The notes under the pieces are model-generated. The model had not been told where the DNA came from. It saw only the letters and a list, made by a program, of their open reading frames with translations, and ran no database searches. 64,000 bases of DNA from Mytilus edulis (lineage: Eukaryota), in the NCBI RefSeq assembly GCF_963676685.1, contig NC_092344.1:117986001-118050000 (forward strand). The letters are read 5' to 3'. This document shows positions 40,601 through 49,600 of the stretch, in pieces. Within the stretch, counting starts at the first letter, position 1. Each line of letters begins with the position of its first letter. The position numbers were made by a program, and so were the translations under genes.

Positions 40601-43600
40601 TATGCATTTATCTACATGAATAAAAGAGGTGGGATAAGCACCAATGACCAATCTATACCTGTTATAACACAAGAGGATAAACAACATAATAACTTTTGTA
40701 CTTGTAGTCTTGTAAGAACTATACTGTTGCAAAGTGATTTTGCCAGAGGCTACATTCTATTGTTTTATTATGCTTTTTATTAACCATAGATGGTTACAGA
40801 ATATATAAGACTTGTTCACTCACCTGTCAGGTCTATCTCTAAACATTCTACCTGTAATATTCAAACATAATGTCAATGAGTGACCATGAGTCACAATTAT
40901 AAATTTTAAATTCATGAACTGTGAATTTTTTAACTTGAGGCTTTTACATTCATTATAACAGAAATTAAAACAGATACATTTTCAGTGTTGAATATTTGTT
41001 CTCTATAAATCTTGATATTGTATTGTCTTAAACTTTGACTGATTGATTATTGTTTGTGTAATAATATCCAGTGACAAATATTTCATGTATGTAAAAAGAA
41101 AAAAAACATCTTCAGGACAAATTCTCAAGCTTTGGAGCTGTACACATCTTGCACAAAAGGAGTATAATAATAATAATAAATTCTTTATTTAAAGAGGGTA
41201 AACTCAGTTAGATACAATAAACTAATCTTCCCTGAGGCCCTCACATACAAATTACAATACAATCAACAGATATTTACACATAGTTAATTTACAGTCATGT
41301 AGTTCAGTGTTTTGTTATTAACATAAGATATAATGCTGTTTAAGATGTACATGTAGTCAAAAAAATCAAACGAAAATAAAAAATATACAAATAGATTGTA
41401 GCAAACATTTCTTATCAGGATTGTGTTAGGCAGCAACCATTTGATTTTCTGGGGGGGGGGCTATGGTTTTTTTTGGAAAAAAAAGTTTGTTTCCAGTTTT
41501 TGGAGAAAAAAATAATTTGTTTTTGATTCTGAGAAAAAAAAAATGTTTGTTTCACCCACAGCTGCCACTATATGTAATGCTAAAATTGAAAGAAAAAAAT
41601 TGTTTTCGACTTGTCGCGAAAAAAATAGATTGTTTTTCGCCACAGGCGAAAATAAAAGTTTGTACAGAAAAAAAAAAACATAGCCCCCCCCAGAAAATCA
41701 AATGGTTGCTGCCTTAGGTACTTTTTGATATTTTGCTTAAAAGTAAAAGTGTTTTGAGCTTTACGCATTTTGCGTGGTAGTCCATTCCATAACACTGATC
41801 CCAAATAAGCAAAGGATTTCTTAAATAGCTCAGCTTTTGGATTAGGAACTATCAGATTACCTTGAGTGACACCTCTTAAGGAGTAAGGATTATTATCTGA
41901 TTTCAGTTTAAACTTTTGAACTAGGTACATTGGTACTTCCATACGCATACATTTATATAGAAGTAAATATTTGTGATATTTTATTCTATTGTCAATTGTC
42001 ATCCACCCAAGTTTTTTAAATAAGGGGGCTGACGGGGAAAAGGATCTGCATCTAGAATTAATCTTGCTGCCCTTTTTTTGGAGTTTAAAAATTCTTGTTA
42101 TTCCTTCATTTTTACATTCAACCCAAATAATACAGCAGTAGTCAATTAAGGGAAGAATATACCCTGGAGTAGGTCCAGTAAGACCCCTTTTTGGCTCCAA
42201 AATATAGCAGTTTTACAAAATTGTTAAAATGTAAACTTTTAGTTATTCATTGGAAAGTAGAATGCTTCTGCAACATAAATATGGGTTGTTTCTGAAAATA
42301 CAATGTACATATATCAGGTATTAGCATCATCAAGTCATGCTTAATTACTAAAATCTTCACATTTTTAGCATTTGAGTTAATTTTAGAGTTTTCGTCTAAA
42401 ATGAAAGTGGCCGCATTTGTGTTCATTCTTAATATTGAAACGAAGTTGTATTTGATGATAATACATAACATATATAAAGGTGGAGGATGAACACAGATGC
42501 GGCCACTTTCATTTTTGACAAAAACCATCTGAAAAGTGACATGTTTTGGCATATTTGATCGATTTTTCATATATGAGCTTGAATCGGAGCGTTTGAATTA
42601 CTAAATCAGTTAAAATCTTTCACACAATCTATTTGATTCAAATGAAACAGACACTTAAGTGTTTAAAAAGTGTCCAAAATCTTTTGTCAGTTGAAACCTG
42701 AAATTTGAGGCCAAAATCAGACCTACTCCTTTCAGAAGATGTTAACAAAACATCGACATTAAACCTACCTCCCTCTCTATCAAAATCTCCTCTTGGTCGT
42801 TTTCTTCTTGGTCCTTCAAAATCGTCCATGCGCCTTCGTCTGCAACATCAAAAGACCATACATGTATATACATCCAGAAATTGACAAAATACACAACATC
42901 CGAACAACTTTTAAATTAACAAAGCTTTCGGGATATGAAAGTGAAATGTAGCAATCATGAGGCAAAAGCATATCCATTTATGATTGCTATATATGTTTTT
43001 TTTTCTGAAAAAAAACCCCCTCCTATTTCTTTTTATTAACAAGTCAAACAAACAAACCCACCTCCCCCATTTCACGTCTAAAAATAAATTATTTGCTCAT
43101 GATTGCATTCTTACTTTGTGAAGCAATATGAGGCTTAACAAAAGTCTTAAATTAACATGGTAGAACAAGAAAATTGCATTATTGGTATAAATGTGAAACC
43201 AACTGGTCATTTGAACACATGCATGCTATTATTCATCTTTTTTTTGTCTTGACATTGTCACTGAAATCTGAACCATTAAAACTCAAAACATATAATGTGC
43301 ATGACTGGGATAATATTAATTTCAAACTTTCACTTTTTGAAAACTGTACCACTGCCTAAGAATGTTCAATAAAGAATAAACTTGATTCCCCAAGTATCAG
43401 CAATGAAATATATATGTGTACATTATGTGCAACTTTTAAATCTTTTTTTTAAATTTAACAATAGAAATGTAGCATTTAATTAAAGGAGATGAGATGATTA
43501 AAGTGCCATTTTTTATTTGTAAAATAATTTTCTCTCTCTTTAATACCTCAAGTTAAACTAAGAAATATTATCATATTCAAGAAAAATACATTGAAATAGA

Positions 43601-46600
43601 TTAAGGCAAAAGCCAATATTTGAAAGGTCAAATGACAAAAACTTGATTATTATAAAGTAAGTTGGTGAGCAGCTGATATAAAGCTTGATACATGTATGCC
43701 CAGGACATTGAACATTTGTCTGTTTGTCAATCTCTCAAGACAATACATTGACCTCTTATTTGGGAAAGAACGACTTAAAAGTGAACGGAAATGACACAAC
43801 AATCTCATGAAATAGTAGGAAATAAACTACTTGTATTACTGTTCATCATCTTGATGTCTCACTGGATGACTTTCAGTAAAATCTACATAACCTTAACTTG
43901 TAGCATCAACTTCAGCCATAATGAGTTACAATAAGATCTAAGGCATCAACTTTAGTGATCATGACTTAAGTGATAATCTACAAGGCCTAAGCCTGGAGCA
44001 TCAATTTCAGTAATCATAACTTACAGTAAGATCTAATTCTTCAGTGCTCATAAATTAATTTTATATCTAAATCTTCAGCTCTCATGACTTTCAGTAAGAT
44101 CACCATGACCCAAGCATGTAGCATCAAGGTGAGCAAACACGACTTACAGTAAGATCTCAAGTTCTCAACCTTTAGGACACATGACTTACAGTAAAGTCTA
44201 CTTGGCCTAGACAGCAGCATCAAGGTCATCAATCATGACTTACAGTAAGATCTTAATCTGCAGTATCAACTTTAGGACACATGATTTACAGTAAAATCTT
44301 CATGGCCTAGACTATAGCATTTATTTTAGCAATCATGAACTGCAGTAAGATCTTAATCTTCAGAGCTCATAACTTACAGTAAGATCTAAACATGCAGCAT
44401 CAACTTTAGAGCATATGACTAACAGTAAAATCTAATTGGCCTAGACAGTAGCATTAAAGTCAGCAAACATGACTTACAGTAAGATCTTAACCTGTTGCAC
44501 CAACTTTACAGCTTACAGAAAAATCATCATGGCCAAGGCTACTGTAGCATCAAATTCAGCAATCATGATTTCAATAAGATCTTATTCTTCTGTACTCATC
44601 ATTTTCAGTAAAATCTGCTCATGACTTGCTATAAGATCTACATGGCTTAAGTCTGTACCATTCAATCAAATTCAACATTCATAACTTAAAGTACAATCTA
44701 AACCTTCAGAACTCATGGCTTACAGTTAGATCTTAAACTCAATGCTCATGACTTACAGTTAGATCGATGTGACCATAGCCTATTGCATCACCAATGCCAG
44801 CAATCATGACTTACAGTAAGATCTTAATATGCAGCATCACCTTCAGGGCTCATGATTAACAGCAAGGTCTACATGAAATAAACCTGTTTCATCAAATTCA
44901 GCTATCATTGCATTCAGTGAGATCTGCATGATTTGGGCAAGAAGTATGAACTTAAGGCTCATGACTTACAGTGAGACCTAAATAATCTAAGACTGAAGCA
45001 ACAATTTCAGCGATCATAACTTAAAAGATCTACATGCATCTACTTCAGTTCTCATGACTTTGACAGAACCAACTGATAAGTATCAATATCTCTGTTGAGT
45101 TTCATTGAAAATGGTAGCGTTTTTTATTTTTCATTTTAGGGGAGTCAATTATGATTACCATATTGTAGTTCTAAGTTTTTCACTAAATGACAGTCTGTAG
45201 TTTATAAACATTGGTACATAATGGCATACTATATAACTATATATATAATATTTATATCAACATTGCTGAAGCAATTATTTAAACAGAGTTTCAAACAACA
45301 TGTCATGAAAAGCTGTAAGGATAAAATGTAAATTGGTTTGATATAAATTTTCTTGTTTAGCTTATAATTTAATAATATACTGTTATGCTTATACATCAAT
45401 TGTTTTGTCCCAAAATTATTTGGGAAGTCGTATCATATTTTCAGGCTAACTTTCATTTTCTATAATAATATTCCTTTTATCTCAAGAACTACAAAAAAGA
45501 CATAATTATTTTACACCAGATATTAAGAAACTTTGCAACTTAAGCCCTTCAAAATTTAGTCCCTATTTTGACTAAGGGAGATAAATCTTCATCTAAATTA
45601 TTTGATCTCTAACTTATGCACACTTGTAAAATTTGGAGGCAGTAATAAATTTCTAATGTAGGTGATCTTATAAAAAATAAATCTCTACTTATATTCATCA
45701 AATTAAAAAGGATTTCCGTTAGAAGATTTATAAGAAACTGATATTAGGTTATTAACATTTAAAGGACATTAACTTATTTGCATATTTAAGCTTGCTTTAA
45801 ATAAGGCCAATATGAAATAAAATCTAAACTCCCTGAAAATATTGAATTACAAATGCATTGACACCTATGATGTATAAGGCTAAATAATACAATAGTACAG
45901 GTTTAGTAATGCACAAACTTAATATTATGACATGTTCAATTGACCAATTGATTTGACATATAACTATTTACTCATTTAACCCAAACCATTACTTGAATAT
46001 AACATACCATAGTACACAAATCCACACAAGAAGTTAATGGCTATTGTCACCATATTATTGTGGAATAAGTGTCCACATAACTAACATTGTCAATTAATAT
46101 GTAAAATGTTCACTTGCTAATCTATTCTTCAGTTTAAATCCACACTTAATATCAAAATCAGACCACAAATATGGACAGTTTACTTAGTCCTTTTTAACAT
46201 GTGATCTCCTTTTGTGTTATGAGTAAGCTCGTTTTACCCAAACACAGAAATTTAAGTCCTGTATTTACCATAGGGCACCACACTACAAACCTATTATATC
46301 ATTTTAACACAGCAAGTCCATTTGATAGAATTTTAGTCCATAGATTATTAGTCCTTTTATCACAACTATTATCTAAATAGTCCTTTAAACTGCAAACTGA
46401 AATAAGGTCCTTAAATTTTCAAAAGAATAGAATTCAGTCCTGGAGTGGTCTTCATTGAAAAAGTTGTTTGCGGAAAATTAAGTTCGTAATATATGGCAAT
46501 TTTAATCCATTTAGCACATTTTCATCGCATTTTTCATTATACAGCTTTTTTTGTCCCTGCTAAGATTCTTCTTGATATTGCAAGATTAAAAAGACCTGGA

Positions 46601-49600
46601 ACATCTTCAAAAGTAATAAAGTAATAAATACAAATGTTTTAGACAGTTACTGTTCAACAGTCTATACTTACCACATCAAGTTTACAAATTTAGACAGTAA
46701 TTTTTGAAATTATTTATGTTTTTGAAAAAGTTAAAAGAAGTTTGGATGTTCAGAAGTATCACCCTCTGTGTTTCTTTCCTTTATTTTTGGACCAAGAATA
46801 GGACAAAGTTTTGTCACCAAGTGAGATTTCTGGTGATCAGCTTGGTTTTACGTGTAGTGGTCACGTGAAATATAATACAATGTTCAAGTTATTCCTTTAG
46901 AATTACACATGTTGTAGGCTAACCTAAAGAAATCACCACGTCCAAACCGACCGCGGAAATCTCTTCCACGGAAATTTTCTCTTCTACGTTCAATATCAAC
47001 TCCTCCTCCTCCTCGTCCTCGTCCTACTCCCTCTCCCCCATCTCCTCCTGTACTGCCATTAGCTCTCCGTACAGAATGTCTTTTACGAGCTTTTCGCACA
47101 ATGGAACTCAAGTCTACATTTTCATCTGCTGAGAAAAGTTTACACAACATTTCTCCACATTTTGGCTCGATATCCTATAAAATAGAATTTGTCAATAAAT
47201 AAGTAATATCAATTTAATTCTACAGGCATATATATAGGATCTGAATAACTTATACTGATCTTACATTCCTTTCTTTGGAATATATAAGCATTTCTTTAAC
47301 GGGTAATCAGACACCCTGCCTAAATGCTTTCAGGCTTAAAATACTGCTTCAGTCTTCATTTATATAATGTTCAAATCATCTCGCATTGGAACAATTTTCC
47401 TTTTTCTTTTTATGTAGTTTAATTGTAAATCAGTGCAAATTTAACACTGAAGTTGTGCGTTTCAACCCTGTACATGGTAGGTGTTATCGACTACATTCTT
47501 AACTAACTAGGATTATCAGTTGTGAGTTTCAACCATGTTCATGGTAGGTGTTATGGACTACATTCTTAACTGACTAGGATTATCAGTTGTGAGTTTCAAC
47601 CCTGTACATGGTAGGTGTTATGGACTACATTCTTAACTAACTAGGATTATCAGTTTTCCTACAGATGGTTGATGGTTCTCTCCAGCTTCCTCGAACCAAA
47701 AAAAACTGAACGCAATGAGATAGCAAACCCTGATGAAAGTGGTAGTAAACACCAATCAATCAGTGCACATAAAATGAAATTTTTACAAATTCAGAATAAC
47801 ATCAAAAATCAATTTCCTTCTAATGAACATTCTCTGGATAAAGTTTTAAATGAATTGCGGTAAATAAACATGATATATAGTCCTTTTTAAAATATTCAAA
47901 AAGAAATTTGCCGACATAAATGCATACCTGTCCGTCACGACCAATTTTGACAGGTTTGTTGTCATTCCAACCATTGTGTAGATGTTGTGTCTTTGTGAAA
48001 GGTAATTCTCGTCTGAAAATTTGCCATAATATTAAAGTTATTCTTTACAATTATCTAAAATTATTTCTTGAGGTGGTTCAAAAATAACAGACATGGTATC
48101 ATCAAAGTATCATCGTCAAATACAGTATACATGTGAGTTTTTAATTTGCCTATGTAGGTTGTTATCAAATTTTAAAAGTACCTTCTATAGGTACCAGTAT
48201 GTTTGGATTGTACATCTTATACATTTTTTCAATTTTTTTTCATTGATATTGTGACACAGAGGCTTCTCGATATATATTGGCATTTTCAACAATACTCAAT
48301 TTAGTTCAGATTCAAATCAATCCAGATTTCTTGATATTGCCAGGTCTCATTCTAGAATAATAAAATACATATTTGTTCAAATAAATCTTTCGCCTACAAC
48401 AAAATTCACTAAGTTAGTGCTAATTACGATAATCAACAAAATTCACTAGGTTAGTGCTAATTACGATAATCAACAAAATTCACTAAGTTAGTGCTAATTA
48501 CGATAATCAACAAAATTCACTAAGTTAGTGCTAATTACGATAATCAACAAAATTCACTAAGTTAGTGCTAATTACGATAATCAACAAAATTCACTAAGTT
48601 AGTGCTAATTACGATAATCAACAAAATTCACTAGGTTAGTGTTAATTACGATAATCAACAAAATTCACTAAGTTAGTTCTAATTACGATAATCAAACTAC
48701 ATAAGATGCATATTTTAATATTTAACAATGAATCCCTTGAATCATTAAACATAAGTTTTACATATATCATGTATATCAAACCTGTTAATCCAGTCAAGTT
48801 TAAATACCCCACTAAGTGCTCTAGCACTTAAACCAGGAGGTAGAACCCATCTGATTGGTGGATGATCTTTGGTGGATTCATCAGCAATTCTTGCATAACC
48901 TGTAAATAGTCAAATGATTGAAATCACTGTAAATTCCTATTATGATTTCTTTAAACTCTGGTTTACAAAATGTATTTGTATCTTAAACATGTATTATTAA
49001 TATAAAAAAAAATGCCTTTCAAAATCACTCCCCATTTTTTCTGGAATATCTTAATTCTTTTTGTTTTTAACTTTCTAATTAGTAAGTAGAAGAATCAATC
49101 TTCACAGAAGCTACTTTTATATATTAAAGAAAGTGACCTCTTTAAGAATGAGCTGAATAATTGTCTCTGCAAATAGGGGTTTCAACATAACTTTGTTAAA
49201 TCTAGTATTTACAATACCTTGAAATTTTCCACTTTCTTTAACAGAAAATATCAATATCACATTGTCATGGTTCTGAAAAAAATAATTGAAAAAGATGTTT
49301 TAATTGTTTTTATAACACCAAATTATTCCTCACAGTACATAGAAATGAAAATTTAGCAATTATTTTTAGCAGCTGTACATTCACTTTTTCATGGCTTAAT
49401 AATTAGTAGTCAACCAATAAACATAGCTTAAATTTAATTCATATTGTATTTAACTACATTTAAAATCAACTATTCCTATACATATATTTATTTCATTTTG
49501 ATATTGTACCGAAATCTATTTTTTTTAAAATCCAACATAACCTTCCAAAGATCATTTAAATCAATAAAATATAACATAGTTTGTTTTCTAGCTCACCCTA

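Follow-up and report, generated by a model that had tools for sequence, protein, structure and literature searches.

The mouse Ythdc1 loop and its probable mussel counterpart

In the mouse, the gene encoding YTHDC1, the nuclear reader of N6-methyladenosine (m6A), is itself subject to m6A-dependent splicing, and heavy methylation spans exon 11 and intron 11 of its transcript (Wei et al. 2021, PMC8327914). A minor isoform, which uses an alternative 5' splice site, represents 20-30% of junctions in embryonic stem (ES) cells and falls to about zero upon acute or stable loss of METTL3, while YTHDC1 mRNA and protein rise; knock-out of Ythdc1 phenocopies the m6A-dependent events (PMC8327914). Retention of intron 11, followed with dedicated primers, also falls in Mettl3 knock-out cells (Koertel et al. 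2021, 10.1101/2020.12.20.423675). More generally, in such events m6A lies downstream of a repressed upstream donor and upstream of an enhanced downstream donor (PMC8327914). The present work deals with a minus-strand gene of the mussel Mytilus edulis that is, judging from its sequence, the orthologue of YTHDC1, and with the intron following the last exon of its YTH domain. This gene lies in a stretch of 64,000 nucleotides free of N (NCBI RefSeq assembly GCF_963676685.1, contig NC_092344.1, positions 117,986,001 to 118,050,000), hereafter called the window, and all positions given for the mussel are those of the window. The intron carries a cluster of GGACU motifs between two 5' splice sites that are both used, the second one yielding a transcript with a premature stop codon. 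We consider it rather probable that this arrangement is a switch, dependent on m6A and YTHDC1, by which the transcript is turned into an unproductive or truncated isoform, and that it is orthologous to the intron-11 loop of mouse Ythdc1.

The likeness with the mouse system concerns the gene family, the intron position, the existence of a minor downstream 5' splice site, a "poisonous" alternative exon part, intron retention, and the location of DRACH sites between both donors. The share of the minor form is of the same order, with 16% in the mussel (3 of 19 junction reads) and 20-30% in mouse ES cells. By contrast, m6A peaks, METTL3 dependence, knock-out phenocopy and the rise in protein were measured in the mouse, whereas the mussel system is known from sequence, RNA junctions and conservation. 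The mussel also has a conserved in-frame tail and a conserved, unused strong U1 site (see below). The mouse precedent had been invoked in a preliminary description of this locus, which also placed the intron at the position of mammalian intron 11. The precedent is indeed real (PMC8327914; 10.1101/2020.12.20.423675), and the positional equivalence holds at a resolution of 26 residues. Once translated, the mouse primers place PSRREP in exon 11 and PEFHQRP in exon 12, which brackets intron 11 within 26 residues. The mollusc junction (EISR|RRRHREEFESPRVKRSRMDYD in octopus, GDFFR| in the window) aligns within this bracket, the lizard orthologue being used for comparison, and its position is therefore consistent with orthology to mammalian intron 11, at the level of a protein rather than a nucleotide alignment.

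Other feedback events described in the mouse involve an alternative last exon in Wtap intron 6, an alternative 5' splice site in Spen intron 2 and a cassette exon in Ythdf1 (PMC8327914). The logic is the one proposed here, the transcript being steered into a non-productive form by m6A close to a 5' splice site, but the genes differ. No GGACU cluster was found in the scanned parts of the mussel WTAP locus. The best YTH-family locus of the mussel genome (L005, G000:C12:29532145-29535552) is YTHDF-like and consists of a single long exon, whose five GGACT are all on the gene strand; in mouse Ythdf genes, methylation occurs in the long coding exons.

Splicing coupled to nonsense-mediated decay (NMD) is also documented in genes for RNA-binding proteins, including the poison exons of SR proteins, the cryptic 5' splice site of AtGRP8 (PMC2602770) and intron retention in Chtop (PMC5175361). 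These share with the mussel locus an RNA-binding protein gene, a conserved non-coding element and a premature stop brought in by alternative splicing. In these systems, however, the protein binds its own unmodified motif, whereas the presumed mussel signal would need a writer as well, so that the loop would sense the m6A level in addition to the level of the reader. Control of the splicing of a regulatory gene by m6A in or near an intron is further known from METTL16-dependent intron detention in MAT2A (Pendleton et al. 2017, cited in PMC13629450) and from Drosophila Sxl, the splicing of which through YT521-B shows that a YTHDC1-type reader controls splicing in a protostome (reviewed in PMC5488161). 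MAT2A relies on another writer and another motif (METTL16 hairpins) and Sxl is another target; neither corresponds to autoregulation of a reader gene. A literature search yielded no description of reader autoregulation outside mammals. Regarding the machinery itself, MT-A70 writer genes are present in the mussel genome, m6A components are listed in Mytilus in a recent survey (PMC13629450) and DRAC motifs are known to carry m6A in oyster (PMC10787124).

A second donor and a GGACU cluster beyond the YTH domain

Identification of the gene relies on homology searches run with single exons, by reference. In a structure search, exons D and E best matched solved YTH domains of human YTHDC1 (E=2.6e-11), YTHDC2 giving a weaker match. 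The Pfam YTH family matches the locus, exon E aligns to human YTHDC1, and full-length relatives annotated as YTH domain-containing protein 1 occur in cephalopods, gastropods, bivalves, chelicerates, amphioxus and vertebrates. The structure match, the Pfam family and the names of the relatives are thus all in line with the assignment to YTHDC1 made in the preliminary description. Exon D (47928..48015, minus strand like all features described here) encodes part of the YTH domain (...VKIGRDGQ) and ends at a donor reading CAG|GUAUGC; the junction 47174/47928, which joins it to exon E, was found in all four RNA runs. Exon E (46924..47174, 251 nt), delimited by RNA junctions and orthologues, is the last exon of the YTH domain and also encodes an RGG-rich region (DIEPKCGEM...GRGDFF). 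Exon F (42765..42839), supported by junctions and loose read ends and aligning to the vertebrate protein, provides the acceptor common to both donors.

The upstream, productive 5' splice site, UAG|GUUAGCCU (46916..46926), reads UAG|GUUAGC at 46924. It is suboptimal, with U at +3 and a U1 duplex energy of -5.5 kcal/mol. U at +3 is rare in animal donors, in which purines dominate at this position. Read-through of this donor reaches an in-frame UGA at 46884..46886, 13 codons further, which precludes the full-length protein. Both the weakness of this donor and the stop had been pointed out from the letters alone, and the U1 energy (to be compared with -11.0 kcal/mol at 46672) and the translation bear them out. 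The downstream, alternative 5' splice site, AUG|GUAUGUUA (46000..46010), reads AUG|GUAUGU, with 46008 as its last exonic base, and gives the GT..AG junction 46008->42839. The alternative exon extension thus covers 46008..46923 (916 nt), is supported by RNA contigs, lies in single-copy DNA and forms with exon E an exon of 1167 nt. The premature stop is located 876 nt before the 46008/42839 junction, hence more than 50 nt upstream of a later junction, and another junction follows at 42765.

RNA evidence was drawn from one raw RNA-seq run (X24) and from contig sets of other studies (X1, X3 and X4), all placed on 42400-48100. We take the contig sets to represent RNA, because the depth of intron D-E is zero in all three with the exons covered. 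The productive junction 46924->42839 was found in 16 reads of X24 and in one contig of X3. The alternative junction 46008->42839 was found in three reads of X24, i.e., 3 of 19 junction reads, and in a contig at depth 86 in X4; in X1, loose ends on both sides of this junction match the letters of the partner exon. A contig of X4 runs unbroken through 48015-47928^47174...46008, reading from spliced D-E through the canonical donor, and a contig of X1 spans 46008-46953. Depth over 46008-46923 exceeded that of the remaining intron in X4 (57 vs 12), in X1 (29 vs 10) and in X24 (about 3 vs 0.3). A cassette poison exon, running from the canonical donor to an internal acceptor, was dropped as a candidate, as no such junction was found in the RNA data.

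The preliminary description had assigned the alternative donor to another site, GUG|GUAAGUAU (46664..46674), which reads GUG|GUAAGU at 46672. This site is indeed present and has the best U1 complementarity of the region (-11.0 kcal/mol), but it was spliced in no run: no read or contig of the four runs joins 46672 to 42839, and this site was dropped as alternative donor. The RNA-seq check proposed at that stage was thus negative for the 46672->42839 junction and revealed instead another downstream donor, at 46008, along with coverage of the intron. As a consequence, the GGACU cluster, formerly seen as lying just downstream of the alternative donor, is located upstream of the donor really used and is exonic in that isoform, inside the 916-nt extension and between both 5' splice sites. 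The 46672 site is nevertheless kept in a related species yet unspliced in the four runs. One possible role is that of a U1 decoy acting on the weak upstream donor; alternatively, the site might suppress nearby poly(A) signals (AAUAAA at 46785, AUUAAA at 46506).

Intron retention was also observed. In X3, a single contig covers the entire intron, its depth being about 14% of that of the exons, a sign of retention. The rest of the intron (42840..46007) is found in RNA contigs at 10-60x in the three studies providing contigs (X1, X3 and X4), versus zero for the neighbouring intron D-E; it is thus retained or detained, in addition to the use of the alternative donor.

The cluster itself (46186..46440) comprises, within 255 nt, seven GGACU and one GGACC, which match the DRACH consensus of METTL3/14. 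On the minus strand, the 5' ends of GGACT are at 46440, 46383, 46354, 46339, 46319, 46259 and 46190, and that of GGACC at 46410. The cluster thus follows the upstream donor by 484-738 nt and precedes the downstream one by 178-432 nt, and the antisense strand of the 916-nt extension contains no GGACT (a strand asymmetry of 7:0). The cluster is far from the junctions of the 1167-nt exon, in what would in mammals be a zone permissive for m6A, methylation being excluded by exon-junction complexes near the junctions. This motif scan confirmed the count announced in the preliminary description, as well as its estimate of about 0.1 GGACT expected by chance: randomly chosen stretches of the mussel genome, 170 kb in total, contain 0.106 GGACT per 255 nt, with at most three in any 255-nt span, and the 38 GGACT of the minus strand of the window lead to 0.15 expected (Poisson 3e-10). 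The non-repetitive context that it had reported was confirmed too. The extension region is single copy in the 1.37-Gb genome assembly, and there is no tandem array: one 15-nt duplication covers two sites and the other sites occur in unrelated contexts. An origin of the cluster from a transposon or tandem repeat was dropped on these grounds. A structured RNA, snoRNA or miRNA that would explain conservation or depth was also dropped, as no Rfam family matches the cluster region and its RNA folding is no better than that of shuffled sequences (z = -0.15). An antisense open reading frame across the cluster gave no match in a homology search.

Conservation was evaluated in a related species. Among metagenome contigs, a scan found a single orthologous locus, L002 (JYMV01006814.1, 6168 nt), in which the protein encoded by exon E is 78% identical; a scan of genome contigs returned no match. 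By blastn, the window and L002 align in four regions only: exon C, exon D, exon E with the extension (68% identity over about 1 kb) and the alternative-donor block (81%). Neither the two upstream introns nor the 2.4 kb past the alternative donor gave a blastn alignment to L002. Together with the alternative-donor block, the extension is thus the sole non-coding DNA of the locus that still aligns. Aligning the orthologous intron had been one of the checks suggested at the outset, and it shows that the GGACU cluster has held its position in a species in which the other introns fail to align. The sense strand of L002 holds 16 GGAC[A/C/U]. Eight GGACU and three GGACC all fall at +457 to +778 nt from the donor; of the five GGACA that make up the rest, one is close to the upstream donor and four immediately precede the alternative donor. 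GGACU is absent from the antisense strand throughout the contig (8:0). Seven of the eight GGAC cores of the window are column-exact in L002 and the eighth is displaced by 1 nt, with a U->C change at one site; within the same block, 36% of 4-mers are fully conserved (binomial P = 4e-3). Beyond its first 40 nt, the best conserved block of the extension is indeed the cluster, with 72-85% identity. The signals flanking it are kept as well. The productive donor UAG|GUUAGCC is identical, the stop is at the same codon (UGA in the window, UAA in L002, and also kept in P0003), the 46672 site is kept as GGUAAGUAU (at +252 nt in the window and +272 nt in L002, about 2915-2925) and the alternative donor as GGUAUGUUAUAUUCAA. 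It may be added that positions 3520-3720 of L002, just upstream of the alternative donor, comprise about three tandem copies of a unit of about 70 nt that add the four GGACA; in the window, one degenerate copy is present, and its sole GGACA is at 46074.

These data bear on the view that the cluster is a chance or neutral one, for example a decayed local repeat in a weakly spliced intron, the 46008 junction being splicing noise. Dense GGACT runs are frequent in the tandem repeats of this genome, one 15-nt duplication explains two of the sites, and the raw reads for the alternative junction are few. Such a neutral origin is nonetheless highly improbable, given that the sites, the donor and the alternative donor are kept in a species with otherwise unalignable introns, that the junction was found in three independent studies, that the region is single copy and that the strand asymmetry recurs (7:0 in the window, 8:0 in L002). 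The sequence comparison points to non-repetitive context, position and conservation as the traits that set this cluster apart.

The identity of the factor recognising the sites should also be considered. The array could be bound by another RNA-binding protein, for instance a STAR/Quaking-type protein reading ACUAA, or an SR or hnRNP protein, which would control the alternative donor without m6A. Conserved intronic arrays of enhancers or silencers are common beside regulated splice sites, which counts for this explanation, as does the fact that the heptamer GGACUAA is found at three of the seven sites of the window and at five of eight in L002. However, the invariant part is GGAC, the GG of which lies outside the STAR motif, and the bases following ACU vary (G, A or U, with one ACC). 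The host gene, moreover, is the reader of exactly this motif and its mouse orthologue is m6A-regulated at the same intron. We therefore regard control by another binding protein as improbable, although less so than a neutral origin.

The read-through tail and the fate of the alternative isoform

The weak donor and the peptide encoded just after it were followed across molluscs by reading orthologous junctions from short open reading frames and gene models, the searches being run with exon E (profile-free) and with the octopus protein. Right after the last exonic arginine, each of the 16 aligned sequences from other species has a leucine; Sinanodonta, outside this alignment, has a phenylalanine there. 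As the arginine codon is split AG|G, the next residues fix the start of the intron as GUU(A/G). Inferred in this way from protein fragments, the GUU donor is conserved in Mytilidae, Ruditapes, Sinanodonta, oysters, Haliotis, Lottia, Littorina-like and Nucella-like gastropods and Octopus, and its signature is also found in several fragments without a taxon name.

The read-through tail often ends in frame as ...RG[I/V/L]T-stop, after linkers of 12-35 residues. This ending was found in Mytilidae, Ruditapes, Sinanodonta, Octopus, Haliotis, Lottia, Nucella and neogastropod transcripts. Tails are seen in P0002-P0004, P0009, P0010, P0022, P0057, P0059, P0066 and P0071, and at 46884-46923 in the window. 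Their consensus, R-LGLF..GL....C..RG[I/V/L]T-stop, is more conserved than the RG-rich end of the preceding exon. Such in-frame conservation suggests that the short isoform may be translated, and hints at a short YTHDC1 protein. In Mya arenaria, the two annotated isoforms P0015 and P0056 differ by a 13-residue in-frame insertion (CHDFTGCLHDNNF) located exactly at the junction, which is thus alternatively spliced, in a different manner, in another bivalve.

The tail is the basis of a second explanation, in which a functional short YTHDC1, made of the YTH domain and of a tail ending in RG[I/V/L]T, is produced. The cluster, located in the 3' untranslated region of that isoform, would then act on stability, export or translation, by way of YTHDF-type readers for instance, and not on the choice of splice site. 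In line with this, the tail is in frame across mollusc groups despite linkers of different length; where the tail of L002 departs from that of the window, the change is conservative, synonymous or from stop to stop; gene models or transcript contigs elsewhere end in it (P0010, P0057, P0059, P0066, P0071); and the depth of the extension is above what the junction ratio predicts. By contrast, oyster, Mactra and Tegillarca lack the tail motif, which is moreover subject to ascertainment bias because it is visible only when in frame. The stop is placed 876 nt upstream of the used exon junction and no use of a polyadenylation site within the extension was seen in the RNA data. This second explanation appears to us rather unlikely, yet it is the most serious of the alternatives, and it can coexist with the feedback model. 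Considered from the sequence, the position of the stop fits NMD, and the conserved tail fits a translated short reader devoid of the C-terminal low-complexity region.

The feedback model, which we favour, is built on the gene identity, both junctions, the retention, the stop, the cluster with its conservation, the weak donor and the positional match. Most transcripts join the weak donor to exon F and specify the complete protein; a minority, about 1 in 6 of the junction reads, uses the donor located 916 nt further on, and others retain the intron. From a mechanistic point of view, METTL3/14 would methylate sites of the cluster co-transcriptionally, and YTHDC1, which prefers GG(m6A)C, would bind the methylated sites. 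Bound YTHDC1 would then suppress the weak upstream donor and/or favour the downstream donor or retention. High m6A or reader activity would thereby divert the pre-mRNA to an isoform that may be degraded by NMD or may give a protein without the C-terminal Arg/Asp/Glu-rich region. The outcome would be less full-length reader, i.e., a negative feedback loop. Within this scheme, we infer the presence of m6A on the sites, the control of the splice choice by METTL3 and YTHDC1, and the fate of the isoform.

Several points weigh against this model. The GGACU sites considered here are consensus matches only, and three to five of them include the letters ACUAA, which form the core of STAR/QKI and branch-point motifs. 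A genome-wide search for three GGACT within 75 nt gave 8435 occurrences, and the reversed control 12011, almost all of them in micro- or minisatellites; density alone is therefore not distinctive, and the Poisson rarity is not relied on. Evidence for the alternative junction comes down to three raw reads and to contigs of two other studies. As a single orthologous intron sequence was compared, the cluster is shown to be conserved only across a divergence of Mytilidae level. The rule placing an NMD-inducing stop more than 50 nt before a junction is established in vertebrates, not in molluscs. Finally, the in-frame tail and stop kept in many molluscs agree better with a short isoform that is translated than with one destined solely for decay.

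A more ancient history may tentatively be proposed, although we think it somewhat less likely than its contrary. The feedback could predate the protostome-deuterostome split, its ancestral elements being the weak donor (GUU), an alternative exon part rich in GGAC and a second donor further downstream. Molluscs would then toggle between two forms of the reader, the short one bearing the ...RG[I/V/L]T tail.

Significance and minor features of the locus

Feedback control of the m6A machinery has so far been shown only in mammalian cells. If the same device indeed operates in the same intron in molluscs, the loop would date back roughly to the origin of bilaterians, and m6A homeostasis would be a core selected feature rather than a mammalian refinement. 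The ratio between the 46924 and 46008 junctions would then offer a reporter of m6A activity readable in ordinary RNA-seq data from mussels and other molluscs, which are widely used in environmental and aquaculture studies. The GUU donor, the unused U1 site and the tail of the short isoform provide handles on how m6A near a 5' splice site changes the choice of donor, a question left open by the mouse study.

Some other features of the locus deserve mention. Exon F is joined at 42765 to a next small exon (..MFRDRPD..), placed approximately at 40824..40847 from the loose-end consensus of 21 reads, with three mismatches at its far end. The part of the intron that does not align to L002 includes a minisatellite at 44006-44490, with periods of 34, 100 and 134 nt. 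The mouse primer for intron-11 retention (reverse complement GGATTTCACATGGTCACGTTGG) loosely resembles ATTTCACGTGACCAC, found on the minus strand at 46855-46876, 50-70 nt into the extension; this resemblance is probably due to chance. Lastly, in the intron downstream of exon F, positions 42400-42590 reach an RNA contig depth above 10,000, with many variants and loose ends, and correspond to a highly expressed dispersed repeat.

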